A stretch of 64,000 bases of DNA from assembly GCF_006345805.1 (NCBI RefSeq), contig NC_043009.1, positions 56,296,001 through 56,360,000 of the forward strand, given 5' to 3'. Numbering within the stretch: position 1 is the stretch's first letter; every line of letters starts with the position of its first letter. The translations under genes were made by a program, and so were the position numbers. This document shows positions 2,297 to 48,140 of this stretch, in pieces. This DNA comes from Octopus sinensis (taxonomy: Eukaryota). The notes beneath the pieces were generated by a model. It was not told where the DNA came from, made no database searches, and saw nothing but the letters and a program-made list of their open reading frames with translations.

Positions 2297-4501
2297 GGCT
2301 TCTTTCATTTTTCATTTACCAAATTCACTTACAAGGCTTTGTTTGGCCTGGAGCTACAGTAGAAGGTACTTGCACAAGGAGCCACACAGTGAGACTGAAC
2401 TCAAGACCATGTTATTTGGAAGCAAATTTCCAAACAACACAGCTATGCTGTTGAGCCAATGCTACTGATGATGATGATCAAAACGGTGGTGGTGTAGGCA
2501 GTGGCGGTAGTGGTAGTGATGACAATGACAATTAAAGCTAATTTAGTGGAGCAATTTTTATTATTTGCTTAACAATTTGGTTCATTTATATTTTGTTAAT
2601 TGAATATCTGAATTACAAGTAACAGTTGAAAAGTTGAGATAAAATCAGCAGACATGATAATGTACAAATTGATCAAGTACAGTATACATATTTCATGAAA
2701 AATTCTCTTTCAGATGTTGATAATAACTTAGTACCTTACGTACTGAATATCATGCACCCAAAAATGGAAGAGCAATTGAGATTAGCCAGAAATGTAAAGA
2801 TATTGGAAGCCTTAGAGGTAAACAAATTATATTTTAATAACAATGGTTTCAAATTTTGGCACAAGGCCAGCAATTTTACATCAGTGGGTAAGTTATTACA
2901 TCAACCCCAGTGCTCAACTGGTACTTATTTTATCAACCCTGAAAGGATGAAAGGCAAAGTTGATATTGGCAGAATTTGAACTCAGAACATAAAGGCAGAC
3001 AAAATGTCACTAAGTATTTGTCAACTTTGATATTCATCCTTCCAGAGGTCAGTAAATAAAGTACCAATCTAAGACAGTGAATTGTTGGAGTGGTAAAATG
3101 GTTAGAGTTTCAAAAGGATACCTTGTGATATTTGTTTCATCTCTTTGTGTTCTGAGTTCAAATTCCACCATAGCCAACATTGGTGTTAGACTTAATTTTT
3201 AATTTTGTTATGTTTAACACCACCACATGGTCCTTGGGTGCCTTGGCAGAGTTTTTTTTGTTGCCAGCATTCAGGCCATTTCTCTGTTTTAGGGATACCT
3301 TTTCCACCTTTCTTCTCCTTCCTATCAGTTTCGTATGCTCGTTACAAAAAAGGTCACGTGTACTAACCCAGCAACAAAAGCAAAAATACAAATAATCATG
3401 TTTATCTGCAGAATAATGTAGAATGATTAGAATAGAATCTAATGTATTAATAATGTGTTTGTATTTGGTTTACAAGATTCTTGATATGAACTCATGTGTT
3501 GAAACAAATCTTGTTGCATCTTGGGAGGGTCTTTATGCCAATAATATAAAACACATGCACTGGTTTAATATCACTCTTTATTGTTAGTCAGTTGGTTAAA
3601 TATCTAAGTAACTAACTAAATGATCAATCAGCATCATCACCATCGTTAAATCTCCACTTTTCCATATTTGTATGGGTCAAATGGAAATCATTGAGGTAGA
3701 TTTTCTATGGCTGAATATTTATACTGTTTCCATTAACTTCAACAGTATAAATATTTATTCTTTCATTTGCAATATAAACATTTCCTTCCTCCGGGCGAAT
3801 CGGCAGTAGTCTAGTGGAGTGAGTCAATCCTGACCATACAAGCATAGCGGGGAAGCACCACGAGGTAGCAGCTTGAGAGAGCTGCTGGAGACACGTCTGT
3901 ATCATTCAGCTGCTAACGTCAAAAGAGAGAGATAAAGGAGAACTTTGCTGCTGCTAGTTTTCTGCACATGTACAAGAGGGAAGTTCCGGCAGGCCTTCCA
4001 GAAGATTCCAACCCTGTCATGCATGCTGGAGATTTCCAAGATGGCGTCACTACAATCCCTTCCAACCCTCTCTTATTTCCAAGCATCATAATATTTTCAA
4101 ATGGCCAGGCATGTTTTTCATGGAAGACTGGAAGCAATTGACATCCTTTGTTTGACCCAGATGCTTATTTACAACCATGATGTCAAGACAAGGGCACACA
4201 TACACACATTGGGCAGTAATAAGTGACTGAGACCTTTGGCAATATACTGCTTGAGAAGACCAGTCAAGCCAAGTGAGAGCATAGTCGTGCCCAATGCCAG
4301 TGTTTCATAACTGACACCCATGGCGGTAGCACATAAAAAGTATCTGCTACACTCTTGGAGTGGTTAGCATTAAGAAGGGCATCCAGCTATAAAACCCATG
4401 CCAGATTAGATTGGAACTTGGTGCAGCTCCCCAGCTTACTATTTTTCAGTCAAACCATCCAACCCATGCCAGCATGGAAAACGGGTATTAAATGATGAAT
4501 A

Positions 4502-4547
<46 letters not shown>

Positions 4548-6237
4548 TAGGCTTCTTTCAGTTTCTGTCTACCAAATCTATTTGCTGGAATTTGGAGTGC
4601 CCAGGGCTGTAGTTGAAGACACTTGCCTAAGATGCCATGCAGTGAGACTGAACCTCAGATTACATTGTTGGGAAGCAAGCTTCTTAACCATAGCACCACA
4701 CTTGCACCTATACTGCTTCCTTTATATAGCAGTGACTGTGTTGTTGAAAGAGTCTAGAGTGACATGTCTCCATTGCAGAATGTAGTGTGCTGGGAATTCA
4801 CAGTAAAATGTATTTTCAGGCCTATACAACCAGGAAAAGCAAATCTCCTAATGATTTGATAAATGTCTTTCTTTTTTTTCTACTTTCTTTTTCTTACCAG
4901 GAATTACAAGTACATGAAAAAGATCTCAGTTTCCTATCAGAAGAATATCAAAAGATTCTAGAACATGCAGAGAGTATCAGAAATGAGTTTTCCCAAAGTT
5001 CATTCCACTTAGAAAGACTTCATAATATCCTTTTTCTTAGCAACCATCTTATTGATTTCTTTTATTGGTGGTGGTGGTGGCTGGGGGGCAATTGTATCAA
5101 ATTATCTCTCCCTCTCTTTCACAACCACCACTATTGTTATTGCTGTCATCAGAACTGAAGTTGACTAAATCACTAGAAAGATGAATTCCCAATCAAGATT
5201 TGATGGTTTGTATTCAATAATAGTCAATGTACTATGTCCATGGTCAACATACATAGCTTTAAATTCTCAACCAGGATCTATTTAACCCCCAGGGGTCCAT
5301 GAAAGGAAAATAGTAAATTAGGGATCTACAGTAATATTTTAAGGGTCCATGAAAATATGTTACTTTGGATATATTTATTGCCAGAAACATCTAGGCTTCT
5401 TTCTCTAACATTTTACACTGTTCAACCTACACAAGTTAACCCTTTAGCACTTAGCTATCATCATCATCGTTTAATGTCTGTTTTCCATGCTAGCATGGAT
5501 TGGATGGTTCGACCGGGGTCTGGGAAGCCAGGAGGCTGCAGCAGGCTCCAGTTTGATCTGGCAGTGTTTCTACAGCTGGATGCCCTTCCTAATGCCAACC
5601 ACTTTATGAGTGTAGTGGGTGCTTTTTACATGCCACCGGCACAGGGGCCAGAGGAGGTTGGCAATCCAGTCGAAATATTCTACCCGTTTTATGTTCAAAC
5701 CAGCCAGATCAGGCCTCTTACAAGTAACCTACAATGTCAATCTAAAAATAAACAATCACATTATATTCATCTTGAAACTACAGGACATGATCAATTTAAA
5801 ACAATGTGAATAAAGAAGCATTGCATTTGGCAGAGAAATCTTAATGCTAAAGGGTTAATGTATAAAAAACAAAATAGGAATTTTGAAAGAAGTATCTGTA
5901 AAATTAGTCTTTAACTACAAGTGAGAATAGGGACCTACCAGAATAAAATAAGTAATCAAAGGGGTTCATGGGAATTAGGTGATGCTGCAAAATAGATTCT
6001 TTGCATCATAAAGACCACACACACAAAACTCATCAATTTAATCATTTTTAATATGTATGTATTTATATTATTGAATTCCTTAACTCTTTCTCACATGTTA
6101 TTACAGATTTATTTATTGACAGCAACAGATTTAAAGGACATGATGTCAAAAACAAATTACCTATTCTTAAAGACATTCTTATAAACTATGACCTGTGCAA
6201 ACTGGTTAGGTTTTTTGATACTGCCACTGAGTCATGA
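290..6237 (+). CDS. BBS7: Bardet-Biedl syndrome 7 protein (BBSome subunit), 3' part; exons 290-454, 1141-1250, 2714-2817, 4901-5024, 6095-6237; gene begins upstream of the window
   Basis: Spliced frame is continuous across five exons. It matches the BBS7 C-terminus as recalled (GQFSF.E.HSW..CLPE.PEKPP; [11 protein letters not shown]....EATK.KI; HPK.E.QL.LA; ELQ.HE; HLERL..ITDLFID..FKG..VK.K.P.L..IL..YD). Confidence 0.93.
520..900 (+). mobile_element. Heavily decayed RTE-type LINE 3' fragment in a BBS7 intron
   Basis: Degenerate traces of HVA and GRPHATW-like C-terminal RTE motifs; many stops. Confidence 0.3.
1141..1250 (+). CDS. BBS7: BBS7 exon: (S)[36 protein letters not shown]
   Basis: Acceptor ttgcag|t; donor g|gtaagt; frame joins both neighbours. 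Confidence 0.93.
1490..1897 (+). mobile_element. tRNA-derived SINE, family A (CORE-like ccttgggcaagtgtctt domain, internal TA/TG microsatellite, tail ending gtaaaagagtaaaagag)
   Basis: Same modules recur at about 30-215, 17260-17560(-), 19864-20030, 35990-36500 and 60145-60512(-). Degenerate B-box ggttcagtcc. Confidence 0.8.
2027..2450 (-). mobile_element. Family A SINE head with RTE-LINE-type tail
   Basis: Head modules at 2290-2450 and (cat)n tail at 2027-2040, as in the copies at 16221-16550 and 20050-20460. Confidence 0.65.
2714..2817 (+). CDS. BBS7: BBS7 exon: (D)[34 protein letters not shown]
   Basis: Acceptor ctttcag|at; donor gag|gtaaac. Confidence 0.92.
4901..5024 (+). CDS. BBS7: BBS7 exon: [41 protein letters not shown]
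   Basis: Long polypyrimidine tract then ccag|gaa; ends at non-canonical donor a|ATATCCTTT (U12 type). Confidence 0.92.
5025..6094 (+). other. BBS7: U12-type (minor spliceosome) AT-AC intron, last intron of BBS7
   Basis: 5' splice site ATATCCTTT at 5025-5033; branch point TTCCTTAAC at 6076-6084; 3' end CAC at 6092-6094, 10 nt after the branch motif. Splicing gives in-frame [15 protein letters not shown], which aligns with BBS7. Confidence 0.9.
5440..5854. mobile_element. piggyBac-like MITE (TTAA|CCCTTTAG...CTAAAGGG|TTAA) with a nested LINE-tail insertion at about 5459-5665
   Basis: TIR CCCTTTAG(c), TTAA on both sides; second copy at 14261-14463 shares internal sequence. Confidence 0.75.
6095..6237 (+). 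CDS. BBS7: BBS7 terminal coding exon: (N)[46 protein letters not shown]
   Basis: Follows the AC acceptor; TGA stop at 6235-6237; matches the BBS7 C-terminus. Not in the ORF track because it is short. Confidence 0.9.
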
Positions 6238-6443: not shown

Positions 6444-6540
6444 ATCATCATCATCATTTAGCGTCCGCTTTCCATGCTAGCATGGGTTGGATGGTTCAAC
6501 TGGGGTCTGGGAAGCCAGAAGGCTGCACCAGGCCCCTTAT
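6444..6540 (-). mobile_element. Short 5'-truncated copy of the RTE LINE 3' end
   Basis: Nearly identical to the tail at 6563-6670; separated from it by (TA)n. Confidence 0.8.
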
Positions 6541-6562
6541 CTGTATATATATATATATATAT

Positions 6563-9500
6563 ATCATCATCATCATCATCATCATCGTTTAGCGTCCGTT
6601 TTCCATGCTAGCATGGGTTGGACGGTTCTACTGGGGTCTGTGAAGCCAGAAGGCTTCATCAGGCCCAGTCAAATCTGGCAGTGTTTCTACGGCTGGATGC
6701 CCTTCCTAACGCCAACCACTCCGTGAGTGTAGTGGGTGCTTTTTACGTGCCACCCGCACTGGTGCCAGACAGAGCTGGCAAACGGCCACGAACGGATGGT
6801 GCTTTTTATGTGCCACCGGCACGAGGGCCAGGCGAGGCTGGCAACGGACACGAAACGGGGCGGTGCTGGCAACGGTCGCGAAACGGAAAGTTCTCTTACA
6901 TGCCACCGGCACTGGTAACACATCTGCAATTTCCATTGATCGATTTCCATTGATCGATTTCGATTCTGATCGTCACTTGCCTCAACGGGTCTTCACAAGC
7001 AGAGTTTTGACATGCCACCGGCACTGGTAGCACATCCGCAATTTCCATTGATCGATTTCGATTCTGATCCTCACTTGCCTCATCACGTCTTCACAAGTAG
7101 AGTTTTGTGTCCCAAGAAGGGAAGGTATGCATACGTAGGCTGGCTCCATCCCATGTAGAAGGCCACGGGTTATGGACTCACTTGTCCTGCCAGGTCTTCT
7201 CGCGCACAGCACACTTCCAGAGGTCTCGGCCTCTAGTCATTTCCTCAGTGAGACCTAAAGTTCGAAGGTCGTGCTTCACCACCTCGTCCCAGGTTTTCCT
7301 GGGTCTGCCTCTTCCACAGGTTCCCTCAACCGCTAGGGTGTGGCACTTTTTCACACAACTATCTTCATCCATTCTCGCCACATGACCATACCAGCGCAAA
7401 CGTCTCTCTTGCACACCACAACTGATGCTTCTTAGGTCCAGCTTTTCTCTCAAGGTACTTACACTCTGCCGAGTGTGAGTACCGGCATTACACATCCATC
7501 GGAGCATACTGGCTTCATTTCTAGCGAGCTTACGCATATCCTCAGCAGTCACGGCCCATGTTTCACTGCCATGTAGCATGGCTGTTCGTACACACGCATC
7601 ATACAGTCTGCCTTTCACTCTGTGCGAGAGGCCTTTTGTCACCAGCAGAGGTAAGAGCTCTCTGAACTTTGCCCAAGCTATTCTTACTCTAGCAGTTACA
7701 CTTTCAGCACACCCGCCCCCGCTGCTGACTTGGTCACCTAGGTAACGGAAACTATCAACTATTTCTAGTTTTTCTCCCTGGAAAGTGACGGAAGTTGGTC
7801 TCAGAGCATTTTCAGTGTTTATTGTTCCTGAGCATCTGCCACATACAAAAACCATCTTCCTAGTTAGCCTTCCTTTGACATTGCTGCATCTCTTATGTGT
7901 CCATAGCTTACACTTGGTGCATCTTATAGAGTTTCTACCTACACCTTTTCTACAGATCGAGCAGGGCCATCTACCTGAAGGTGTTTGTGATTTGTCTACC
8001 TTCCTACTGATTACGACTTTGGTTTTAGCTAGATTGACTCTGAGGCCCTTCGATTCTAATCCTTGTTTCCACACCTGAAACTTCTCCTCCAGTTCTGATA
8101 GCGACTCAGCAATTAGAGCAAGGTCATCAGCATAGAGGAGCTCCCAAGGGCATCCTGTCTTGAATTCCTCCGTTATTGCCTGGAGGACTATGATAAATAG
8201 GAGGGGGCTGAGTACTGAGCCTTGGTGGACTCCTACCTCTACCCGGAATTCTTCACTGTACACATTTCCAACCCTCACCCTACTAGCGGCGTCCCTGTAC
8301 ATGGCCCGCACAGCTCTCACTAACCATTCATCTATCCCTAGTTTCCTCATTGCCCACCAGATAAGGGATCGGGGGACCCTGTCGAAGGCTTTCTCCATGT
8401 CAACAAAAGCCAGGTACAGGGGCTTATCTTTGGCTAGGTATTTCTCCTGCAGCTGCCTTACCAGGAATATAGCATCAGTAGTACTTTTCCCTGGCACAAA
8501 CCCAAACTGCATCTCATCTAAACTAACTCTCTCTCTAATTAGTTGGGCTATGACCCTCTCCGTAACCTTCATCACCTGGTCCAACAGCTTGATACCTCTG
8601 TAGTTATTTGTATCTAGGGCATCACCTTTACCTTTGTAGCAGTTGACTATTATACTGCTACACCAGTCATTGGGTATGACCCCTTTGTGTATCACCTGAT
8701 TAACTATACGGGTGACTAGGCTATAGCCGACACTACCAGACATTTTGAGCATCTCTGCAGTGATTCCTGATGGGCCTGGGGCTTTCCCTGTCTTCATGCT
8801 TCTAATTGCCTTAGCTACCACGGAACTATCAACTCGGATAGCTGGTCCCTCTGTTGGGTCAACATTCGGCAGACTCTCTTTATCCCATTCATTTTCTTCA
8901 TTCAGCAACCTATCATAGTGGCATCTCCAAACCTCTCTCTTTGCATCCTCATTTAGCGCAAGTGAACCATCTTCCATGCGAACACACTTCTCTCCTACCA
9001 CATCACGATTCTCTCTCACACACTGTCTTGCAACACGAAACACCTCCAGTCTTTGGTCCTCACGGCGCAGAACATTGGCAAATTTTTTCTTATCTGCTTC
9101 CCCTCTGGCTAAATAAACCTGTCTCCTAGCTTCTCTTTTGGCAGTCTGATACAATCCCCTGCTACCCCCATTTTTCCAGACCTTCCAAGCCTGTCTCTTT
9201 TCTCTAATAGCCCTGTCTACAATATTGTTCCACCACCACGTTATTCTAGGTCGAGAGGGGACTTTGCACCAGCCACAGATCTGGTCAGTGGCTCTCAGCA
9301 GGTTGTCCCTTAGAAACGTCCAGCTGTCTTCTACCCCCTGTGATGCTCTATCCCCTTCTACTTCGTCAGAGGCTTCAAGTAATATGTCCCTAAATCTCTG
9401 TCCATTTGCAGGATCTTTAAGCTTCCAGATCCTTCTTCTCCATATTTGTCGTCTTCTGGTTGTCCTCCTAGTCCTGATCCTAAAGTCACTAACTACCAGT

Positions 9501-9930
9501 CTATGTTGTGGGGTACATTCTTCACCTGGGAAGGTTTTGGCATTTATAAGCAGCCATCTCTCCCTTTGCCTTGTAAGGATGTAGTCAATTTGGCTGGTAT
9601 GTTGGCCCGATTGGTAAGTGACTAGGTGGCTGGTAGGTTTCCTGAAGTTAGTGTTGCAAATCATAAGATTATTTGCATCGCAGAACTCCAGCAGCCTGGT
9701 TCCCTCCTCGTTGCGGGAGCCATAGCCATAGCCTCCATGTACGCCATGGAAGCCCCCAGCATGTCGTCCAACGTGACCATTGAAGTCACCAGCCACAAAG
9801 ATAAGGTCTCTGTCGTTCGTCAACGAGGTAGTCTGCAGTAGAGTGTCATAGAATCTGTCTTTCTGTCCATCGGGTAGCCCCGATTGAGGAGCATAGGCTG
9901 ATATAATGGTTGCTAAACTATGATGAAGCA

Positions 9931-9935
<5 letters not shown>
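6563..9935 (-). mobile_element. RTE-clade non-LTR retrotransposon, 5'-truncated within the APE endonuclease; 3'UTR 6563-7177 ends in (GAT)n
   Basis: ORF 7178-9931 has partial EN (AYAPQ, GDFNGHVG, SQIDY), RT (KAPGPSG, YRGIKLL, QFGF, KAFD, GVHQGSVLSP, YADD), YLG, and C-terminal RRLRWYGHV / GRGRPRKTW motifs. Confidence 0.95.
7178..9931 (-). CDS. LINE ORF (partial endonuclease + reverse transcriptase + inserted PHD finger), 917 codons with no stop; starts at TTG because of 5' truncation
   Basis: ORF track; motifs as above; C4HC3 finger at 7832-7963. Confidence 0.9.
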
Positions 9936-9965: not shown

Positions 9966-10720
9966 TTATTTAAATGAAGATAAGTTTGATTTGATTCACT
10001 TTCGGAAAGAGGAAAGTCTGAAATTACCATATGCTCTTCCCTCAGGTGACTCCCTAATGTCATTCAACAATACTAGAGATCTTGGAGTGATTGTTAAAAA
10101 CAATCTAAGCTGGAATTTCCACGTAAACAGCAAGGTTGACTTGGCCTGCAAGATGTGCTCCTGAATTTTGAGAACTTTCTAGTCTAGAGATGCCTACACC
10201 ATCATCCTTTTCTACTCTACTTTTGCCCGACCCCACCCTGAGTACTGTTGCCCACTGTGGTCCCCTCATATGAAACAACTCATTATGACAGTAGAAGCAC
10301 TCCAGAGGTTCATAACAAGAAAGATAGATGGCATGAGAGGTATTGATTATTGAGTTGACTAAAAAACCTCAATCTCTACTCTCTCCAACAACGCCGGGAT
10401 TGCTACATCATTTTGTTATGTGGAAAATATTCCATCAATATTGCACAAATGATGTTGGCATCAATTTTAAAATCCATCCAAGACTTGGCCACGTGCTGTC
10501 TGCTCAATACCAAAATTTGATCTCAGTACACATAGCAACATTACATCACAATTCCTTTACCTCAACTGGTACAGCTCTCTTTAATACCATACCAAAATAT
10601 ATCAAAACAGAAATGGATCCCATAAAATTCAAATGTTCACTGGACAAATTTCTTCAAAAAATCCCAGACCAACCTCCTACTTGGTTGCTTGGTATTGGAC
10701 AAATGTGTCTGGTGATTGCA
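9960..10720 (+). mobile_element. Decayed CR1/L2-type LINE 3' portion
   Basis: Frame-shifted remnants DLGVIV..NLSWNFHV, RPH.EYCCPLWSPH, LQR..TRKI, LNLYSLQQRR, DKFLQKIPDQP. Confidence 0.75.
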
Positions 10721-11648: not shown

Positions 11649-12587
11649 TTAGCTTTTCTTCTGTTTTTGTTTACGTTGGTCTGACATTTCTGTCAACCTC
11701 TTATCTAACTTACTTTGAAGACGAGCACTTTTAACTGCATTTGGTAATTTGCTAGGAACACCACTTCCGCTATATATGACACCATCACGAGAGATTATTT
11801 TACGAGCTTGAGCTTTTATCTCAGCTCCACAACCGTGAATTTCTGGCATGCTGTGAGATATACAATAATGAAGCCTGCAAAATTCACAGTGTATACGCAG
11901 TACATGGGTCTTTTCTTTACATTTAGGGAAACTGCATTTATTATTTACTTCCATAGCTGCTGATATTAAAGCATCAAAGTCATCTGGATCGACACTGTTT
12001 AGAGCCTTTGTCATCTTATCAGATTTGGCTTTGACTTTGGGCATTTGTGTTGGTTTAGAAGTCTTAGTGTTAGGTTTTTTACTCTTGGAACAATGAAGGA
12101 TATGCAAGTCATAATTGCTTTTTAAAATTTGCCGTGAACAGTAAGAACATGTTTCAGTGTCCTCTGCAGGTTTATCAAAATCAAAAACCGGCACTGATTT
12201 ATTTTGTTTCTTTACTTTCTTTGTTTTTTTATTCTGTTTTTCTTTCATAAGTAGTGATTCATCCAACAACTCACTTGAATCAATAGATATTGCTTGGTTT
12301 GTTGTTGAATCAATAGACATTGCCTGGTTTGTTGTTGAATCAATAGACATTGCCTGGTTTGTTGTTGTATTATCATCACAGTTAGAGGAAGAAACAGTAG
12401 ACATTCCTGTACAGCTGTCTACAAGTTCGTTATCTATAGGTTCATTATCAACCAAGTCTTTGGAAGAATCATTTTCAAGTGTATCACTATGGCTAATTAC
12501 TTGCTCATTATTTGATTTTTTAACAACTATTTGTCTGTCCTTGCCTTCTCCTTCACTGATATGTATCAAACCCAATTTGTTGGCTAT
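11649..12587 (-). CDS. IGHMBP2: IGHMBP2 exon 16 (R3H C-half, low-complexity linker, C2HC finger, AN1 finger, basic tail)
   Basis: ttcag|ata acceptor; ORF track 11649-12575; AN1 CSFPKC...[20 protein letters not shown]. Confidence 0.93.
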   Translation of the reverse strand: MANKLGLIHISEGEGKDRQIVVKKSNNEQVISHSDTLENDSSKDLVDNEPIDNELVDSCTGMSTVSSSNCDDNTTTNQAMSIDSTTNQAMSIDSTTNQAISIDSSELLDESLLMKEKQNKKTKKVKKQNKSVPVFDFDKPAEDTETCSYCSRQILKSNYDLHILHCSKSKKPNTKTSKPTQMPKVKAKSDKMTKALNSVDPDDFDALISAAMEVNNKCSFPKCKEKTHVLRIHCEFCRLHYCISHSMPEIHGCGAEIKAQARKIISRDGVIYSGSGVPSKLPNAVKSARLQSKLDKRLTEMSDQRKQKQKKS

Positions 12588-15500
12588 CTGAAAAAAATAA
12601 CAACAAAAAGAATTTAATTTTAGAATAAGCTTATATATATATAATTATTCTAAAAATAAATTTATTTTGATAAATCTAATATAGATAATATTCTTGCATT
12701 TTGGTAATATTAGTTTCACAGTTTCTTTTACAGATTTTATACTTTAAAAAAGTATAAAATGAGCGTTGGTTTGTCATCAAATTCACAAATGAACTGTATT
12801 GATTCCTATGTTATAGATTCATAACAAGATTGATTCAATGAAATACAAAAATAGTGTTTCAAATAACAAAAATGACACTACTAAAATGCAATATGTTTTA
12901 ACACAAACTGTTTTTCAAAAACATCAATAAAAAAAAAAACAAGAAAAACTTGAAATATTTTTCCTTACTTCATGCACCAGCATTCTTTCAAAAGAATTCA
13001 GTGTAGATGGGAAAATTTTCACAGTTTCCTCAGAGTTTTTTGAGAAATCTGTGAGAGTTTTATGCAGTTCATTATGTCGTTTCGCATCCTTGTCGGCTTT
13101 AGACATTTTGCTGAAATAATAAAAAGTAAGAACTGTAATCCAAACTAATGAGCAGATGAACCACAATCCTCACAGACAAGGAACAAAGACACAAACTCTC
13201 CTGGGTCACTAACAGCAAAGGAATCAGTGGAGTGGACATGAGATGTTTTGGTACAGCTATGTTGACACCACCTATCTGACGTCACTGATTCAATGTTGAC
13301 TTATTTGATACCAAGCATTTTAATGTTTCTCTTGTTCTCCCCACCTCTGTCTATGTGTAAGCATATTTCTGATTTTGTGTATGAGGAGAGGGAAAGTTTG
13401 TATTTCAATTGAATTCAATTAATAAATTGCATCCTCTCTCTTTATCTATATGTGTATACATACATTAATAATAACAGGGTAGGAAAAAATTTAGAAATTT
13501 TTACTACCAGTGGCCTAGCGTGTAGAAAAATTAGTCAATATACTATATATTATTCATATAAATACAGTGTATATTTAAACACATAAGAGGTATCCATCAT
13601 AGGATACCTATTTCTTTACTACCCACAAGGGGCTACACACAGAGGGGACAAACAAGGACAGACAAACGGATTAAGTCGATTATATTGACCCCAGTGTGTA
13701 ACTGGTACTTATTTAATCGACCCCGAAAGGATGAAAGGTAAAGTTGAACTCAGAACGTAGCGGCAGACGAAATACCACTAAGCATTTTGCCCGGTGTGCA
13801 AACGTTTCTGCCAGCTCGCTGCCTTCAAAGGATACCTGGCACACTACTGTATTTATATATGTATACATACAGATAGATAAAGAGATGTGTATATGTATAT
13901 GTCTGTGCATGTGTGTATGAGTTTGCCTCCAGTACCAAAAAGGAGCTTGACATGTCTTATTATGCACAGTGAATCACCAGAAGTCTGTCTCTTGTCATCT
14001 CCTCTGTGAGGCCCAAAGTTTGAAGGTCTTTTCTCACCACTTCGTCTCCTGGGTCTACCCTTTCCATATGTTTCTTCCACAATTAGAAATAAGCACTTCC
14101 TATTATTATTATCCAATTAATTAATCAAGTGTTTGATTAATCATTTTGCCAAGCAGTCAGTTAGCTAACTTTTGTGACTTGCACCTTTGTCAATGACATA
14201 CTTTCTCTACTCTAGGTCTGCTTCAAGTTTGTCTAACCCTATTTCAGATGTATTGTTTAACCCTTTAGTGTTTAAATCGGCCATATCCGGCCTGTTTTAT
14301 GTTCAAACTGATCATATTCGGCCTGTCACGCCTTACATACGATGCCATACTAAAAATAAGCAAGCACACCATTGAAATCTCAAAGCAATAAGATAATGAA
14401 TAATCCAAAACAATGTGAACAAATAAGCATAACAGTCAACAGAATAATCTGAACACTAAAGGGTTTAAAATTATAAACTTACTTCAAACACACAATATTT
14501 AATTATTTAAAATATGGAAGTGATTATGATTTTTATATTTGAAGAAAAGGGGAAATGAAGGATTAGACTAATGTTTTTTGTTTTCAAACCAAAATCTGAG
14601 ACAAACTACAGTCAAGTTTATAATAAAAAAAAAAAAAAACATGGGTCACTCCAAAATATAGAATTACAAGAAAATTTCACAGAAGTTTAAAATATATACA
14701 ATACTTTTGTTTTTCATCACATGGTTTGGGTTTTTTTCTGTTAGCATTTTTACCAATTTCAATGCCATTCATCATTTCCAATTTTCTTAAGGATGACCGG
14801 TCTACAATATCATCTGTTTAAAACAAAATTTTAAAAATTACAGTTCATATTAATTAAAAATTAGTTTAAGAGAGAAAAGAAAAAGAACCTAGAAAGATGC
14901 TTAAGATAGTTAATTGTTGATATTTTAATGAGTAATTTTAGACATTAAAATATAAACTAAAGAATTGAGTAACTAATAATTTCAACTTAGGATTCTTTAG
15001 ACTACATACAATAAATAATGAAAATAAAATTTTCTTTCGTAATTATGGAACTAATTATTAAACAATGTTCAATGATGACAATGCGTACAGTACATTTATT
15101 TGTTATTCTACTCACAAGAGAAGATCACTAATCACTATTCTTATTATTATCACCATTTTTTAACATCCACCTCCCATGCATAGATTAGACAGTTTGACAG
15201 GATCCAACATTCAAAGACTGAATAACACTCCAATATCTGTTCTAGTATTGTTTCTACAGCTGGATGCTCTTTCTAAAGCCAACCACTTTACAGAATGTAC
15301 TGAATACTTTTTTGTGTCACTAGCACTAGTGAAGTTGTCATGCAGCTTACAAGCCAAAGATCTCTTTTGATTGAAGAGAGGGAGGCAGCTTCGTGCTTGG
15401 AAATGAGAACTTCAATTATGAATGAAGGGGCCACAACAAAACAGGTTTCTTGTTGTTGAGGAGCTACATGTCTGCTCACATTTTGGAATAATCAGAGCGG

Positions 15501-27500: not shown

Positions 27501-30500
27501 TAACCACACTACCATGCCTGTACCTGTTTCAGGTTGATAAAATAAATACCAGTCATATAATGAATTAGTTCAACAAAACATGCTACTTTCCAATAAATAG
27601 TAATTCTCAGTTTTATGAATGCAAAGTTTTTTTTTTATAATGGGAAGTATATACCTTTTGTTTCTGCTTGACAGCTTGCAACAAAATCTCAATAACTGTG
27701 GTAGTTTTTCCTGTACCAGGTGGGCCATGAATTATAGCAATATTCTTTTGATTTATTGCAAATTTCACAGCTTCTCTCTGAGATTCATCAAGATTTGTAT
27801 TGTAAAATGTAAAATCTAAAATAGAAAAAGAAACATGCTTATAAAAGAAATTTGTTAATCCATTGTGAGACATGGGAGGTTTCAGGACCATTTTTTTCTG
27901 CCTCCCAAAATTTATAGGCATATAATGAATATAATCAAAAATCATATGGTCAAGAAACCATGCAAAGAGCACTCTGTATGCTCTGTAAAATGATTGGCAT
28001 TAGGAAGGGCATCCAGCTGCACAAACCATTCCAAAACACACAATGGAGCCTTGTGTGGCCTCCAGCCTTATCAGCTCCTGTCAAACCATCCAACCCAACC
28101 CAGCATGGTAAACAGATGATAAATAATGAAGAGGAAGATAATGTCAGTCTTCCATCCTCTAACAAGTTGAACAGTTTGACAGGGTCCAACAAGCCAAAGG
28201 ACTATGTTGTGCTCCAGTGTCTGCTTTAGCATAGTTTCTACAGCTGGATATCTTTCTTGAAGTCAGAATGCTCTTCCTAATGTCAAGTTATCCGGGTAAA
28301 AAAAAAAAACTGTAAATATATTTATAGGATAGATATGTATACATATTTATCTTTGAAAATGATGCAGTTTGGATCTGTACCAAGATATGGTCATATTTTT
28401 AGAGAGAAAACTGCAAAGGATAGATATGTATACATATTTATCTTTGAAAATGGTGCAGTTTGGATCTGTACCAAGATATGGTCATATTTTTAGAGAGAAA
28501 ACTGCAAGAGAATTTCTTAACTAAGAACAAACCAATCTACTTTGCATTCACCAATCTGAAAGCTCAACCTTGAAAGAATGGTTTAGAGTTTGAAGGCCTA
28601 AAAGCCACCATAGTAAAAACCAAGGATCTCACTGCTAACAGAACACTAAGGTGGCTCTGGCTATTAGAGAGGAGGAAAGAACTATGATGCTATATATTCA
28701 CACTCTCTAAAGCATATTTGTGAATTCAAAGGGTTGTAACATACAAGACAATTGCAACCTACCATGACATTTTTCTGAAGAAATGAATTTATGATTAAAT
28801 AAAATATCCAATAAATCGCTGGCTCTTCCATTTCCTGCTTTATGTAATCCACTTACAGCACTGAAAAAAATTTTAATTGAATTAATTTGATTGAAAATAT
28901 TCATTGACAAGAAAATTCTTTATAAAAGATTTTAAATATCTACTGATAACATTAATATAATATGATTTTAATAACTATGCCTGACCATACAGCAATATAA
29001 TTCTGCATACAAAATAGTGAAGAAACAATATGGAAACCCATTGTATGGATGTTTGTGTGCATGTATGCAGTGTGTGATTGTACATGGCCTAGTGGTTAAT
29101 GTCTAGGGCTCACAAATATAAGGTTGTAGGTTCAGGTTCTGAACCAGGTAGTACATTGTATCATTGGGAAAGGCACATCATTTCCTGTTATTTTAATCTA
29201 CTCAGTTAAAAATGCGTATCAGCCTAGTACTGGCGCAGGAATGGCTGTGTGGTTAAGAAACTTGCTTCTGAAGCATGCAGTTTCAGGTTCAGTCACACTG
29301 TAGCACCTTGAGCAAGTGTTCCACAATAGCCTTGTGTTGATCAAAGCCTCGTGAATGCATCTGATAAGCAAAAACTGAAAGAAGCTCATTACCCTTCACT
29401 TGTATGTGTGCACAAGTCTGTGCATTGTTTACATTTGCGCTTGTCCAAAATTTTTGACTTACAAACAGTAAAATTGTTGCCGTTTCTCCTATCAATGTAC
29501 CATCTGTTGACATTGCACTTTGGAAAATGCATAAAGTAAGAGGTCCTTTACTTGAAAAGTGGGTAAAACTTATTAACAGGAAGAGCATTCAGTAGTAAAA
29601 TATTACCTCATTATATGAGTGAATATATGAATATGTATGTGTGTATGCATGTATTTGAAACCATACATAGATTTTAAGAAAATTGGTTTTTGCTCAACAA
29701 TTGTAAAAGTCAAATAAACTATGAAATTCAAACTATTCAACTCTTTAATTATTCTTTTATCATAGCAACATAATTACATACTAATTAAAAGTTAATTTTC
29801 ATTAAATAAAACACTAAATTAGGGAAGTTAATAGAAATTTAAAAATGGAATATGAATTTACCTTTTTAATCTCTTATAAGTCACATCGTTGGCAATTTTG
29901 AGAAGTTTGTAATGAGCATCAGAAGACATGGTCTCTATGTCCTTATATTCATCAAATGCTATTGAAATACTGTTAGAAGTGGTCTTGGAAACAATACCAA
30001 CTGCAATATTCTCAGACTCTGCAGCATTTTTCTGATTTAAACTGAGCTGAACAATGTCACCTATAAAATATAAAATGAATTCAATTATCTATTAACAGTT
30101 GGGACTGAAATCAATAATTCTATGTGTATCATGAGACATTATGGGAAACCTTTCAAGACATGAGCATAGCACTAGAAGGTGATAGTCAAATTTTTAAAAA
30201 AACATAATATTGCATTATGTAAATTAAATTTTAACTGAAAAAAATATTTCTGTATAATTTATTGATACTTTAATGAAAGACAAGGAAGGCTGGAAACAAA
30301 TGATATCACATGCCTAACAGTGACAATTACAACTGTTATATATCAAGACAAGAACACACACACCTCTACATATATGGTGTAAGTGTGGTTGTGTTGCATC
30401 CCATCTACATGGTTTTGAGTTCTGCCCATTGCGTAGCACTTGGGACAAGTGTCTTCTACTACTGCCCAGGGTCATAAAATCTGAGTGATCCAGTGTGATA

Positions 30501-33500
30501 AGGCTGGACCTTTGAATTACAGACACAGTATATCCAATGGGCCTCTATACAATTTATGTCTATCAAAATTCTCTTCTAAGGCTCGAGTCTATTCAGGTCT
30601 ATGGTGAAAACACTTACCCAAGATATCACAGAGTGGAATTGACCTTGGGACTTCAAAGTTGCAAAGGGAATTCTTAATTACTTAGCTGTGTTTACATCTA
30701 GAGGAGCAAGGTATCAACCTTTAAAAGCTTTTCAGGACTAGGGACATCATTGTTTAACATCCAATTCCATGCTTGCATGAGTCAGGAGGAATTTGTTGAA
30801 AAAGATTTTTTATGGCTGGACACCTTTCCTATTTCCTCACCTATTTCCAAGCAAGGTAATATTTTACCATGGAAGACAGGAAATGAAGCAACATTGCTTG
30901 CATGATGGTGATGCTCATTTGCAACCATCACGTGCTGTCAAGTCAAGGATACACACAAACACACACAAAAACATATATATACATATATGACAAGCTTCTT
31001 TCAGTTTCAATTTATCAAATTTGGTCAACCCAGTGCTATAATAGAAGGCACTTAGCCAAGATGCTGTACAGTAGAACTGAATCCAAGACTACATGGTTGG
31101 GAAGCAAGGGTTCCCAACCATGTGGTCTTCATTATATTTCATAATAAAACAAAAAATACATATAAAAATACAATATTAATGTACATTGTGTAATTTTCAA
31201 AATGTAAAATATTACCTGGTGTAAATGAATGAGATGGTAGTTCTTTCTTCATCCATGGTTCAAGTTTAACAATCATACGACCATAAAAACCAGACGCCTG
31301 GCTAGCAAGGTGCAGCTTTAGAAGGCAGACTCCTTTCTTTTCTAATTGTTTTGGAGGAAGTTTCTCATAAAAATAGCTGGAAAACCATTTAAGAAACAGA
31401 TTAAAATTCAATGCCTAACCTAATTTAAAAATGAAAAAAATAGCCTTTTCTGATAATTTCAAGAAATGAAAAATAAATTCTTAAAACTAATTACCATTCT
31501 TTGCATATTTTTAACATTTTATATTTTACTTGTTTCACTGCATTCAAGGGTTTAGTCAATCAAATCAACCCCTTATTTTTTAAAGTCTGGTACTTACTCT
31601 ATCAATCTCTTTTGTCAAACCACTACGTTGTGGAGATATAAACAAACCAACACTGGCTATCAAGCAATGGCAGTTGGGACACAAACACACACACGTGTGT
31701 GATGAGCTTCCACACAGTTTCTGTCTGCCAGATTAATGTACAAAGCTATAGTAAAAGGCATGCAGTGGAACTGAACCTGCAACCACATTGTTGCAAAGTG
31801 AACTTTGTAACCATAATGTGATGCCTGCACCTGCATCATTCATATTATTTAAAGTAATATGAAATAATATAACATTGGGTGATGTTCTTGCTTAGTAACT
31901 GACTTGATCTGAGATTGTGTTGAAGCTGGAACGATTATATCTTGAAAGATTCAAATCTTCATCGTTTAAAATACATTTTCCATGTTGGCAGGAGTTGAAC
32001 AGTTTGACAGCAAATGGCATGACCAGGGGTCACACCAGATTCCATTGTCTGTTTTATCTTGGTTTCTACAGTTGGATGTCCTTCCTAATGCCAACCACTT
32101 TACAGAGTGTAATGGGTACTTTTTACAGGGCACCATCACCAGTGCTTTATTACATGGAAAACACCAATGCTTTTTACATGGCAAACCAATGTATCTTCAT
32201 GATCATAAACATCATCATCATCATTTTAGTGTCTGCTTTTCCATGCTTGCATGAATTAAATGAAATTTGTTGAGGTAGATTTTCTATAGCTAGAAACCTT
32301 TCATGTTGCCAAGTAACTAATATTTCCCCTTAGATCAGACATGTTATCAAGGAAAACAGGAAACAAATGACACACTACTAGTAAGACAGTAATAATCACA
32401 ACTATATGATGTCAAACAAGGTGACAAACAAAGCTACACACAAATACATATGATGGGCTTCTTTCAGTTTCCGTCAACCAAATCCTCTCACAAGGCTATG
32501 GTCGGAGCAGAGCTTAAAGTAGAAGACACTTGTCCAAGATGCCATGCAGTGGGACCCAAAACTATATGACTGGAAAGTGAACTTCTTAATTACCATTATA
32601 TTTATATTTTGTCTTATTTCTTAAGAGGATCTCTCCATACTAGAAAATACCAAAATGCTTTGTTGTACATCATCAAAATAACACACACACACAAATTTCA
32701 CTGCATCTGTTAATTCCACTGAAATACATTGAAACTGTGTCAGTTATTATGTCATAAATCTACAAAATATTTTGACAGTTGATCAGTAATAGCAAGAATT
32801 AAAACAAAAGTGAATGTCACAGCATGTGTTTGTTTTAAATAGCTATCATGGATTTTACATGATGTAACTAACTGGCACTACAAAAAAAAAGTCAAACTTT
32901 AATAATCTCAACAATGTTTCAGAATAGAAAATGAGATTTGTGCATAGCAAAAAAAAACCTATATACTGAACCAGAAAGAATGTGGTTGGGAAGCAAATTC
33001 TTAACCACACAGCCATGCCTGCACACACACCCACAATTTTGTGGGTGTTTACCAGGTCAGTTGCCAGACGTCAGAGCTTCAATGTATCTATGCCCTGGGA
33101 AGCAAGGCGTTCAGGGTATAGTAGATGCCTGATGGAGGGTATTCGCTTGGTTGCATGTCTCTGAACAGTTTCCAGGAGGTCAATGACCTGAGCAAGATAG
33201 GGGTAGCAGACTTGTGATGCAAATTCTAAGTGTAGCCACACCATAGCCATATACAGCCTTAAATAGATAGCTGGAGAGCGGCTGACAAAGGGCTTGATAT
33301 GTGTTGAGAAGGAATCTTTAGGGGTTTGGATAATTCACTTCTGGAAACATGGGTGTTTCATTCATCATCCTTAAACAACCCTTATTTAGAAACCTTTGGA
33401 GTGGGTTGGGCTGCTCAACCTGAAGAAAATTCTAATTGAGCCCTTGCAAGGTCATATGCTGTTCATCTTGATATGAGATCACCATGTTGTGCCTGGTGTA

Positions 33501-39804: not shown

Positions 39805-42800
39805 ACAGGGGCATCAAGCTGTTGGATCAGGTAATGAAGGTTACGGAGAGGGTTATAGCCCAGTTAATTAGAGAGAGAGTTAGCTTAGATGATATGCAGT
39901 TTGGGTTCGTGCCAGGGAAAAGTACTACTGATGCTATATTCCTGGTAAGACAGCTGCAGGAGAAATACCTAGCCAAAGGTAAGCCCTTGTACCTGGCTTT
40001 TGTTGACTTAGAGAAAGCCTTTGACAGGGTCCCCCGATCTCTTATCTGGTGGTCAATGAGGAAACTAGGGATAGATGAATGGTTAGTGAGAGCTGTGCAA
40101 GCCATGTACAGAGACGCAGCTAGTAAGGTGAGGTTTGGCAACGAGTACAGTGAAGAATTCCGGGTAGAGGTTGGGGTCCACCAAGGTTCAGTCCTCAGCC
40201 CCCTCCTATTTATCATAGTCCTCCAGGCAATAACGGAAGAATTTAAGACAGGATGCCCCTGGGAGCTCCTATATGCTGATGACCTGACCTTGCTCTAATT
40301 GCTGAGTCACTATCAGAACTGGAGGAGAAGTTTCAGGTGTGGAAACAAGGATTAGAATCGAAGGGCCTTAGAATCAACCTAGCCAAAACCAAAGTCCTAA
40401 TAAGTAGGAAGGTGGACCAATCACAAACGACTTCAGGTAGATGGCCCTGCTCGATCTGTAAAAAAGGTGTAGGTAGAAACTCTATAAGGTGCACCAAGTG
40501 TAAGCTATGGACACATAAGAGGTGCAGCAATGTCAAAGGAAGGCTAACTAAGAAAATAGTTTTTGTCTGTGGCAGATGCTCAAGAGAAATAAACACTGGA
40601 AATGTGCAGAAACCAACTTCTACCACGTTCCAGGGAGACAAACTAGAAGTAGTTGATAGCTTCCGCTACCTAGGAGACCAAGTCAGTAGCGGGGGTGGGT
40701 GTGCTGAAAGTGTAACTGCTAGAGTAAGAATAGCCTGGGCAAAGTTCAGAGAGCTCTTACCCCTGCTGGTGACAAAAGGCCTCTCGCTAAGAGTAAAAGG
40801 CAGACTATATGATGCGTGTGTACGTACAGCCTGCTACATGGTAGTGAAACATGGGCCGTGACAGCTGAGGATATGCGTAAGCTTGCAAGAAATGAAGCCA
40901 GTATGCTCCGATGGATGTGTATCATCAGTCATTCAATAATCGTCAGAGTGTAAGTACTTTGAGAGAAAAGTTGAACCTAAGAAGTGTCAGTTGTGGTGTG
41001 CAAGAGAGACGGCTGCGCTGGTATGGTCATGTGACGAGAATGGCTGAAGATAGTTGTGTGCAAAAGTGCTACACCCACTAGCAGTTGAGGGAAACTGTGG
41101 AAGAGGTAGACCCAGGAAAACCTGGGACGAGGTGGTGAAGCACGACCTTCGAACTTTAGGTCTCACCAAGGAAATGACTGAAGACCGAGTCCTATGGAAG
41201 TGTGCTGTGCATGAGAGGACCCGGCAGGACTAGTCAGGCCATATCCCGTGGCCCCTACCTGGGACGTAGTCGATCCACCTGTGCATACCTTCCTTCTTGT
41301 GACACTTGTGAAGACCTGCTGAGGCAAGTGAAAATCAAATCAAAATAGATGAACATCAATGGAATTTGTATCTTTGTGGTACCAGTGCCTGTGGCACACA
41401 AGAAAACCATCCGAACGTGGCCGTAGCCAGTACCGCATCGACTCGCCTCCGTGCTGTGGGAACCATCCGAAGACCCGGCAAGACTAGTCAGGTCATAACC
41501 CGTGGGCCCTACCTGGGACGTAGTCAGTCCACCTGTACATACCTTCCTTCTTGCGACACTTGTGAAGACCTGTTGAGGCAAGTGAAAATCAAAACAAATC
41601 AAAATAGATGAACATCAATGGAATTTGTATCTTTGTGGTACCAGTGCCGGTGGCACACAAGAATCCATCCGAACGTGGCCGTAGTCAGTATCGCTTGTGG
41701 TACCAGTGCCGGTGGCACACAAGAATCCATCCAAACGTGGACGTAGTCTGTACCGCATCACTGGCCATCGTGCTGTGGGCACATAAAAACACCATCCGGT
41801 CGTGGCCGTTCGCCAGCCTCATCTAGCACCTGTGTCGGTGGCACATAAAAAGTAGTCAGTACCGCTTGTGGTACCAGTGACGGTGGCACACAAGAATCCA
41901 TCCGAACATGGCCGTAGTCAGTACCGCATCACTGGCCATCGTGCTGTGGGCACATAACAAACACCATCCGGTCGTGGCCGTTCGCCAGCCTCATCTAGCA
42001 CCTGTGTCGGTGGCACATAAAAACACCATCCGAAGACCCGGCAAGACTAGTCAGGCCATAAACCATGGCCCCTACCTGGGACGTAGTCAGTCCACCTGTG
42101 CATACCTTCCTCCTTGTGATACTTGTGAAGGCCTGTTGAGGCAAGTGAAAATCAAAATCAAAATCAAATCAAAACAAATCAAAATAGATGAACATCAATG
42201 GAATTTGTATCTTGCGGTACCAGTGCCGGTGGCACACAAGAGAAAACCATCCGAAAGTGGCCGTAGCCAGTACCGCATCGACTGGCCTCCGTGCTGTGGG
42301 CACATGACAAACACCATCCGATCGTGGCCGTTCGCCAGCCTCATCTAGCACCTGTGTCGGTGGCACATAAAAACACCATCCGAAGACCCGGCAAGACTAG
42401 TCAGGCCATAACCCATGGCCCCTACCTGGGACGTAGTCAGTCCACCTGTGCATACCTTCCTTCTTGTGACACTTGTGAAGACCTGTTGAGGCAAGTGAAA
42501 ATCAAAATAAATCAAAATAGATGAACATCAATGGAATCTGTATCTTTGTGGTACCAGTGCCGGTGGCACACAAGAGAACCATCCGAACGTGGCCGTAGCC
42601 AGTTCCGCATCGACCGGCCTCCGTGCTGTGGGCACGTAACAAACACCATCCGATCATGGCCGTTCGCCAGCCTCATCTGGCACCTGTGTCGGTGGCACAT
42701 AAAAACACCTTCCGAAGACCCGGCAAGACTAGTCAGTCCACCTGTGCATACCTTCCTTCTTGTGACACTTGTGAAGACCGGTTGAGGCAAGTGAAAATCA

Positions 42801-43631
42801 AAAAATCAAATCAAATCAAATCAAAATAGACAAAATAGATGAACATCAATGGAATTTGTATCTTGTGGTACCAGTGCCTGTGGCACACAAGAAATCCATC
42901 AGTGCTGTAGTCAGTGCGATGGGCACATGACAAACACCATCCGATCGTGGCCGTTCGCCAGCCTCATCTAGCACCTGTGTCGGTGGCACATAAAAACACC
43001 ATCCGAAGACCCGGCAAGACTAGTCAGGCCATAACCCATGGCCCCTACCTGGGACGTAGTCAGTCCACCTGTGCATACCTTCCTTCTTGTGACACTTGTG
43101 AAGACCTGTTGAGGCAAGTGAAAATCAAAACAAATCAAAATAGATGAACATCAATGGAATTTGTATCTTTGTGGTACCAGTGCCGGTGGCACGTGGAACA
43201 CAAGAAAACCATCCGAACGTGGCCGTAGCCAGTACCGCATCGACTGGCCTCCGTGCTGTGGGCACGTAACAAGCACCATCCGATCGTGGCCGTTTGCCAG
43301 CCTCATCTGGCACCTGTGTCGTGGCACATAAAAACACCATCCGAGCGTGGCCGTCTGCCAGCCTCGTCTGGCACCTGTGTCGGTGGCACATAAAAAAACC
43401 ATCCGAGCGTGGCCGTTTGCCAGCCTCGTCTGGCACCTGTGTCGGTGGCACATAAAATCACCCACTACACTCTCGGAGTGGTTGGCGTTAGGAAGGGCAT
43501 CCAGCTGTAGAAACACTGCCAGATCTGACTGGACTGGTGCAGCTTTCGGGCTCCCCAGACCCCAGTTGAACCGTCCAACCCATGCTAGCATGGAAAGCGG
43601 ACGTTAAATGATGATGATGATGATGATGATT
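39805..43631 (+). mobile_element. Second copy of the RTE LINE: 5'-truncated at the RT start, frameshifted, with 3'UTR amplified to about 2.4 kb; (GAT)n tail
   Basis: Near-identical peptide to 7178-9931. A 5-bp duplication (gacct) right after YADD gives a stop at 40296-40298; 1-bp deletion near 40835; ORF-end TAG at 41231-41233; tail at 43460-43631. Confidence 0.95.
41219..43460 (+). repeat. Complex higher-order tandem repeat in LINE 3'UTR (six units starting at 41219, 41473, 42036, 42386, 42718, 43009)
   Basis: acccggca(a/g)gactagtcag recurs six times; sub-repeats gtgccggtggcaca and ccatccga.cgtggccgt within the units. Confidence 0.9.
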
Positions 43632-47435: not shown

Positions 47436-48140
47436 ATGCCCAATAAAAAAAAGAAATACAATGCCAGATTTCCGCCGGCAAGAATTAAAAAGATAATGCA
47501 AACTGATGAAGATGTAGGCAAGGTTGCTGCTGCCGTACCTGTTATCATATCCCGAGCTTTAGAACTCTTCATTGAATCGCTCATTTTAAAAGCTAGTGAA
47601 ACTACCCAAGCACGACATGCGAAAACCTTGACAACGGCACATATTAAGCAAACTATTGAATCGGAAAAGAAGTTTGATTTCCTTCGTGATTTGGTTGTCA
47701 ATATCACTGATCACCAGACGGAAGAAGAAATAGAAAGCAACGCTAATTTGGCAGAAACCGGGAAAAAATGTGGAAAGATCACCGCAAATCGTGGACCTCG
47801 GAAGAGGAAAGATTCCCTTACATGTGCCGAACTTCTTCGGACGAAAGAAAGAACGATATCAAATGATGTTCCGGAAGATGATAATGACGAAACAGATGAA
47901 GCAGACAGCGATGATACGGATCAAACTGAAGAGATAAGTAACGCTAGTAAATGTCGGATCATTCCTCCTTCTATTGCAGATGAGACCCCACCTGTGCCCC
48001 AAACTAGCAGTAATGGGTTTCCCCAGGTGAGTTCTTTACCACGAGCTCCTGTTTTATTTCCTCCAACTTCTATTCCCAGAGTATTTACACCTGTACATTT
48101 GAAAGGACAGCAACAAGAAGATGATGATTACGATACTTGA
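47436..48140 (+). CDS. DRAP1: Dr1-associated corepressor (NC2 alpha), histone-fold protein, 234 aa, single coding exon
   Basis: [44 protein letters not shown]...[18 protein letters not shown] is the DRAP1 signature; acidic and Pro-rich tail ending EDDDYD. Confidence 0.96.

Follow-up and report, generated by a model that had tools for sequence, protein, structure and literature searches.

The BBS7 locus

The window analyzed here is a stretch of 64,000 nucleotides from Octopus sinensis (contig NC_043009.1, positions 56,296,001 to 56,360,000 of the forward strand), and all positions given without a contig name count from its first nucleotide. It begins inside a gene which is, by homology, BBS7, encoding BBSome subunit 7. 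The last coding intron of this gene (5025-6094, plus strand, 1070 nt, phase 1) is the main subject of this report. Judged by its splice signals, it is a U12-type AT-AC intron.

Exons of BBS7 were placed by tblastn with full-length homologues from a representative protein search, which located the five last coding exons on the plus strand. The fifth from last (290-454) encodes ...LECSY-S and matches O. sinensis and O. vulgaris proteins exactly; it is preceded by AG at 288-289 and followed by the donor AG|GTCAGA at 455. The next two exons are at 1141-1250, with GT-AG flanks and the donor G|GTAAGT, and at 2714-2817, with the donor GAG|GTAAAC. The penultimate coding exon (4901-5024) directly follows an AG at 4899-4900 and encodes ELQVHEKDL...SFHLERLH plus the first base (A) of an Asn codon. 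The last coding exon (6095-6237) contributes the remaining AT of this codon and reads AT GTT ATT ACA GAT..., staying open through ...FFDTATES to the stop codon TGA at 6235-6237. All three upstream BBS7 introns in the window are GT-AG introns.

The five exons together encode 214 residues, which is only the last part of BBS7; full-length orthologues holding this exact segment carry four Pfam domains (beta-propeller, GAE, platform and hairpin). When 5024 is joined to 6095, the resulting 88 amino acids align without gaps to residues 631-715 of bovine BBS7 (PDB 6vbu chain 7, E = 2.9e-21), which are the C-terminus of the protein as known from BBSome structures, and they match the Pfam family BBS7_hp (PF23349, E = 1.7e-27). 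The C-terminal hairpin domain is present and collinear with its orthologues to the C-terminus. Among the homologues, a vertebrate-like BBS7 model of 708 amino acids (P0007) has a reverse-transcriptase-like N-terminus of about 170 residues in place of the start of the beta-propeller; this publicly deposited gene model is a chimera.

Splice signals of the last BBS7 intron

A first-pass annotation of the window had noted that the penultimate exon ends without a usable GT donor and had proposed an AT-AC intron of the minor spliceosome as the last intron of BBS7. All coordinates and motifs of that proposal were confirmed, as was the exactness of the joined frame, the joined peptide being contained exactly in the O. 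sinensis RefSeq proteins. No GT was found at or near the end of homology at 5024, the nearest being at 4998 (26 nt upstream), 4974 (within the exon) and 5068 (within the intron). Directly at the exon end fixed by homology stands the putative U12-type 5' splice site ATATCCTTT (5025-5033), which matches the consensus in nine of nine positions and the general U12 pattern [A/G]TATCCTTT. The putative branch-point sequence TTCCTTAAC (6076-6084) also matches its consensus in nine of nine positions, and its candidate branch adenosines at 6082 and 6083 lie 12 and 11 nt from the intron end at 6094, within the distance of about 10-15 nt expected of a U12 branch sequence. The terminal dinucleotides are those of a U12 intron, AT at 5025-5026 and AC at 6093-6094, the latter ending the intron as ...CTCAC and being the sole acceptor that retains the conserved V/M-I-T-D residues. 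Only 10 nt (TCTTTCTCAC) separate the branch sequence from the last exon, so the intron has no separate polypyrimidine tract and no room for one.

Neither motif is enriched in the window, with three copies of ATATCCTT against 3.7 expected and two copies of TCCTTAAC against 2.3 expected. Their weight comes from their location, each exactly at a boundary that protein homology fixes independently; a rough estimate puts the joint chance of this near 3e-5 x 2e-4 (about 5e-9). The other copies of ATATCCTT were rejected as splice sites: the one at 12096 (minus strand) lies inside a coding open reading frame (ORF) with a zf-AN1 domain, and the one at 56834 (plus strand) has no TCCTTAAC partner on the same strand. 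MIDB lists similar 12-mers for U12 introns of human and mouse, such as CAGATATCCTTT paired with TAATCCTTAATA (PMC6717393).

The dinucleotide AT is repeated at both ends of the intron (CATA|AT|ATCC ... CAC|AT|GTT), and the junctions 5024|6095 (AT-AC) and 5026|6097 (AT-AT) give the same messenger RNA. Aligners and junction-counting pipelines may therefore report either of them, and the equivalent of 5026|6097 was reported for the O. bimaculoides orthologue.

Rare U2-type AT-AC introns are known, and one could ask if this intron is removed by the major (U2-dependent) spliceosome despite its termini. Such introns have U2-like 5' sites (AT followed by an AAGT-like sequence) and polypyrimidine tracts, while the intron described here combines perfect U12 consensus sequences with U12 spacing, and removal by the major spliceosome is extremely improbable. 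Another possibility is that the U12 5' site is paired mainly with a downstream AG located 12 nt inside the last exon (6105-6106), forming an AT-AG U12 intron whose product would read ...RLH-N-LFID... and be four residues shorter. This pairing is in frame, and U12 introns accept various 3' terminal dinucleotides. They prefer a branch-to-3'-site distance of about 10-15 nt, and the distal AG, at 22-24 nt from the branch adenosines, falls outside this range in which the AC, at 11-12 nt, is placed. The AT-AG pairing would also remove the conserved V/M-I-T-D residues, and no deposited model shows it; we regard it as highly improbable.

The junction in deposited gene models

The 214-residue product is an exact substring of the O. 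sinensis proteins XP_029644246.1 and XP_029644247.1 and of the O. vulgaris protein CAI9732052.1, and shares 97% identity with O. bimaculoides XP_014782164.1. All four model the 5024|6095 junction correctly, so that it is already in public annotation, including RefSeq. The expectation of the first-pass annotation that automated models would probably be wrong at the BBS7 C-terminus did not hold for the RefSeq models of O. sinensis and O. bimaculoides or for CAI9732052.1, which have the exact junction, but did hold for O. vulgaris CAI9732051.1 and for both models of Acanthosepion pharaonis. A further O. vulgaris model, CAI9732053.1, has a different error at the preceding intron, whose donor is read through (...ALEVNKLYF...).

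CAI9732051.1 reads ...EHAE-NLFIDS..., using as donor a weak GT inside the penultimate exon (4974-4975, AGA|GTATCA) and as acceptor the AG at 6105-6106, which is in frame with phase-1 donors, and loses 21 residues in frame. If this GT-AG splice of U2 type were the main one, the AT-AC motifs would be incidental. A deposited model with exactly this structure, in frame and 21 amino acids shorter, speaks for such a reading, as do the moderately pyrimidine-rich run before the AG and its distance of 22-23 nt from a usable branch adenosine. The splice would nevertheless delete the near-invariant ITD and LERL positions of the BBS7 hairpin. Its donor has no G at either -1 or +5, in contrast to the gene's other donors, and is a poor U2 donor. 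GT 4974 is kept in O. bimaculoides and is absent in Argonauta, which has GAGGATATC and keeps the U12 signals. The RefSeq models of two species and the second O. vulgaris model have the AT-AC junction. The O. vulgaris annotation combined ab initio predictors restricted to GT-AG introns with PASA assemblies of Iso-Seq and RNA-seq data (PMC10700109), and such predictors would explain CAI9732051.1 as an artefact. This mixture fits the occurrence of one transcript-like AT-AC model beside one GT-AG model. Taken together, a GT-AG splice as the main one is very unlikely.

Both A. pharaonis models stop at ...RLYDIL, which is the expected read-through of G|ATATCCTT. A scan of the 297 retrieved proteins for a D/N/G-I-L read-through signature at the junction found it only in these two. 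A full-length BBS7 of 715 amino acids from a cuttlefish relative, nearly identical to the A. pharaonis protein, was detected on 2.5-kb Logan contigs, which must be complementary DNA (cDNA), and this protein carries the spliced ...RLYG-IITDLY... where the A. pharaonis models read ...RLYDIL. The homologous intron is therefore removed in a decapodiform, and the comparison indicates that the decapodiform intron starts with A and not with G.

Conservation among cephalopods

The orthologous AT-AC intron of O. bimaculoides (contig L001, 18627-19533, 907 nt) has identical motifs, ATATCCTTTT and TTCCTTAACTCTTTCTCAC|, and that of Argonauta hians is located at 17756-18437 of contig L003 (682 nt). Both ATATCCTT and ATTCCTTAAC are unchanged across the three octopods (the window, O. 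bimaculoides and Argonauta), whereas the flanks of ATTCCTTAAC diverge. Beyond these two islands, blastn detected no similarity between the Argonauta and octopus introns, and their conservation supports a function of the signals. The proposal of a U12-type AT-AC intron in the first-pass annotation thus gains from conservation across octopods as well as from the consensus matches and branch spacing described above. All other resolved BBS7 introns in O. bimaculoides and Argonauta are GT-AG introns, and in nine BBS7 loci the U12-like 5' site [AG]TATCC[TC]T was not found as a splice site at any other exon end. Matches to this pattern inside BBS7 exons of O. bimaculoides, Aedes and Nematostella are coding (ENILIQ, VLRILE and DILVGR) and were rejected as splice sites.

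The Argonauta intron retains ATATCCTTGT and TTCCTTAAC. Its annotated junction, ...RLH-S-VITD, places the intron end at ...CCACTGTAT|GT, giving AT-AT termini and a 3' end 8 nt past the branch motif. No AC or AG within range preserves the frame in Argonauta, and the annotated junction suggests a non-canonical U12 terminus.

An interspersed repeat resembling a short interspersed nuclear element (SINE), starting with CATCATCATCATCGTTTAATGTC...CCATGCTAGCATGG..., is present in about ten copies in the window. One copy lies inside the U12 intron (5457-5663, plus strand) and left the splice signals undisturbed; further members of the family lie near 4321-4498, 6447-6844, 15238-15312, 27959-28132, 32062-32257 and 43417-43618. 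The copy at 5457-5663 is missing from the orthologous intron of O. bimaculoides, and the insertion is therefore younger than the split of the two species.

The same intron position in other animals

Intron positions in the BBS7 loci of labelled species were compared after the first base of the codon which follows RLY/RLH, in the same phase. U2-type introns occupy this position and phase in two vertebrates, the pipefish Nerophis with G|GTGAGT...TGCAG and the frog Ascaphus with G|GTGAGG...TGCAG, as well as in Owenia, an annelid (G|GTGAGT...TTCAG), and Acanthaster, a starfish (G|GTAAGC...AACAG). No intron is present there in Nematostella, in the mosquito Aedes albopictus or in the mite Dinothrombium. 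Among entries listed in the MIDB human and mouse minor-intron tables, neither BBS7 nor any other BBS gene was found (PMC6717393).

Metagenome contigs were scanned with an alignment of the last exon, which gave 58 eukaryotic loci. U2-type GT-AG introns occupy the same position in about 30 of the contigs, annelid-like ones and others. Contigs with an intron length of 0 (L011, L013, L014, L016-L021 and L039) are perhaps metatranscriptome cDNA and were not counted as losses. Three Mytilus-like contigs (L010, L012 and L022), all U2-type, were rejected for taxonomic placement, being 68-74% similar to Mytilus, Lineus and Owenia alike.

Four contigs (L064-L067) are nearest to a protein of the scleractinian Desmophyllum pertusum, to which they are 61-89% identical where aligned, with the lowest value in the shortest alignment. 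Judging from their motifs, these coral-like contigs carry the GT-AG subtype of U12 intron at the orthologous position (L064, 401-864; L065, 748-1207; L066, 1401-1696; L067, 333-1275). The intron starts with G|GTATCCTTT in all four; in L064, L065 and L067, TTCTTAAC or CCCTTAAC is followed by exactly 10 nt and then AG, and in L066 TCCCTAAC is followed by 18 nt and then AG. In two further contigs that contain only the 3' part (L062 and L063), TTCTTAAC is likewise separated from AG by 10 nt. The intron that follows in L064-L067 has an ordinary GTGAG or GTGCG donor in every case.

In Owenia fusiformis, the BBS7 exon segment EINDASIPYTLQLIHPKLEYQL is repeated in six partial tandem copies at 94568-95273 of L007, shortly before the real exon (95336-95440). 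As annotated, BBS7 of Owenia spans 96 kb and has G protein-coupled receptor and EGF/DSL genes nested within it in the opposite orientation.

Evolutionary history of the intron

On the alignments above, the intron position is ancient, being occupied in annelids, starfish, vertebrates, stony corals and cephalopods. Conversion of U12 to U2 introns and switching between the AT-AC and GT-AG subtypes were reportedly described by Burge and colleagues in 1998. Conversion is accepted as running from minor to major introns, and molluscs are relatively rich in minor introns (PMC10639083). Given this direction and the fact that cephalopods share a U12 intron at this site with a cnidarian lineage, the intron is most likely an ancestral U12 intron which predates the cnidarian-bilaterian split, although the direction of class change is one we infer. 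The first-pass annotation had suggested comparing intron positions to decide between an ancestral U12 intron and a class switch; the comparison leans strongly to the former. An ancestral U12 intron would have switched subtype, between AT-AC and GT-AG, in the cephalopod or the coral lineage. It would also have been converted to U2 type at least twice, in annelids and in deuterostomes, and deleted in Nematostella, a mosquito and a mite.

Alternatively, the ancestral intron was of U2 type, and cephalopods and corals each acquired the U12 type later and separately. Most sampled lineages are indeed U2-type (vertebrates, starfish, annelids and several unidentified invertebrates), and simply counting changes over so sparse a sample could favour this alternative. 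It requires that two motifs of high information content arose twice, independently, in one and the same intron, and runs against the accepted minor-to-major direction (PMC10639083). A change from GTGAGT to ATATCC alters five of six positions and must be accompanied by a new branch site at a fixed spacing. A U2-type ancestor is thus quite unlikely.

Proposed splicing mechanism

The steps proposed here follow from established knowledge of U12 splicing. The U11/U12 di-snRNP (small nuclear ribonucleoprotein) would bind cooperatively, with U11 pairing to ATATCCTTT at 5025-5033 and U12 pairing to TTCCTTAAC at 6076-6084, so that A6082 or A6083 would be bulged. The U4atac/U6atac.U5 particle would then join and U6atac would displace U11 at the 5' site. 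The 3' site would be set by its distance from the branch, making the AC at 6093-6094, 11-12 nt downstream, the expected choice without the need for a polypyrimidine tract, while the AG at 6105-6106, 22-24 nt from the branch adenosine, would be too far. The 5024 to 6095 splice would build the Asn codon A|AT and the conserved C-terminal hairpin of BBS7. As the signals suggest, the intron is most likely removed by the minor spliceosome, and production of the hairpin would require it.

Several points weigh against this interpretation or narrow it. The structure of CAI9732051.1 could be a real minor isoform. A search with the junction-spanning 88-residue peptide for short transcript-derived proteins returned two unrelated JGI matches only, none from octopus. 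An Rfam search of the window gave no matches, and it contains no gene for a minor-spliceosome small nuclear RNA; for the minor-spliceosome machinery in octopus, we rely on its documentation in the literature. The coral-like contigs L064-L067 have no taxon label and were assigned by similarity alone, and the labelled mollusc loci sampled at this position are all from cephalopods. With these points considered, it remains very likely that the last coding intron of octopus BBS7 is a U12-dependent AT-AC intron of phase 1, ancient in position, and that the ancestral U12 intron was converted or lost elsewhere.

A more speculative and rather doubtful idea is that the U12 intron, having been retained, acts as a bottleneck for regulation in cephalopods. 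The output of BBS7 and the BBSome would be tuned by minor-spliceosome activity, and inefficient U12 splicing would lead to use of the weak U2-type pair GT 4974/AG 6106. If so, CAI9732051.1 would represent an isoform with 21 amino acids deleted from the hairpin, made when U12 splicing is inefficient. BBS7 would then connect the minor spliceosome to cilia in a lineage-specific way, a connection that vertebrates lost by intron conversion.

Other features of the window

Just downstream of BBS7, an ORF of 917 amino acids on the minus strand (7178-9931) has endonuclease, reverse-transcriptase and PHD matches and corresponds to a retrotransposon of the long interspersed nuclear element (LINE) type, which accounts for the higher G+C content at 6-10 kb. 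More reverse-transcriptase and PHD fragments are located at 39822-40861 (plus strand). Reverse-transcriptase-like matches at 33029-33295 (minus strand) and 10201-10350 (plus strand) are spurious, being caused by the reverse-transcriptase part of the chimeric model P0007.

The ORF with the zf-AN1 domain (11649-12575, minus strand) is probably the 3' exon of a SMUBP-2/IGHMBP2-like helicase. In both O. bimaculoides (L001) and Argonauta (L003), BBS7 has such a helicase as its tail-to-tail neighbour, and synteny is therefore conserved. Another ORF, initiated by ATG and encoding 234 amino acids (47436-48140, plus strand), contains a histone-fold CBFD_NFYB_HMF domain (E = 2.8e-18) and may be a single-exon NC2/POLE3/CHRAC-like gene.

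Comparison with known systems

The octopus BBS7 intron is an example of a well-known class, and the understanding of U12 splicing is unchanged by it. Its 5' site ATATCCTTT, branch sequence TTCCTTAAC, spacing of 11-12 nt, termini and non-0 phase are like those of other U12-type AT-AC introns, and as in other genes it is the single U12 intron among U2 introns. We see no structural difference from that class, although BBS7 is not among the entries listed in the human and mouse tables and the SINE insertion is lineage-specific. In the collection of papers searched, none mentioned BBS7 alongside the terms U12-type, minor intron or minor spliceosome, and none paired minor introns with cephalopod. 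A pan-eukaryotic survey catalogued minor introns in O. sinensis (PMC10639083), and the intron described here has very probably already been catalogued by large surveys. For gene annotation, our findings tell which octopus BBS7 models are correct and flag three deposited cephalopod models as wrong at this intron.

From an evolutionary point of view, one ancient position is U12 AT-AC, U12 GT-AG, U2 or absent depending on the lineage. This is like documented cases of U12-to-U2 conversion and subtype switching (Larue and Roy 2023, PMC10639083), in that a single position carries a U12 AT-AC intron in octopods, a U12 GT-AG intron in coral-like contigs and a U2 intron elsewhere, and is deleted in some animals. 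Unlike those documented conversions, BBS7 is a single-gene case in which the direction is inferred and not observed.

A third comparison concerns cilia. The MIDB tables list TMEM107 and IFT80 as minor-intron genes (PMC6717393). The vertebrate minor-intron cilia genes in MIDB, which also include TMEM231, TCTN3 and RABL2, resemble octopus BBS7 in that a full-length product requires the removal of one U12 intron, and their 5' and branch motifs resemble those described here. Sampled vertebrate orthologues of BBS7 itself, from a fish and a frog, are unlike it in having a U2-type GT-AG intron at this position, so that dependence of BBS7 on the minor spliceosome would be confined to cephalopods and corals. 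Lineages thus appear to differ in which of their cilia genes depend on the minor spliceosome, and BBS7 appears to be one of these in octopus.

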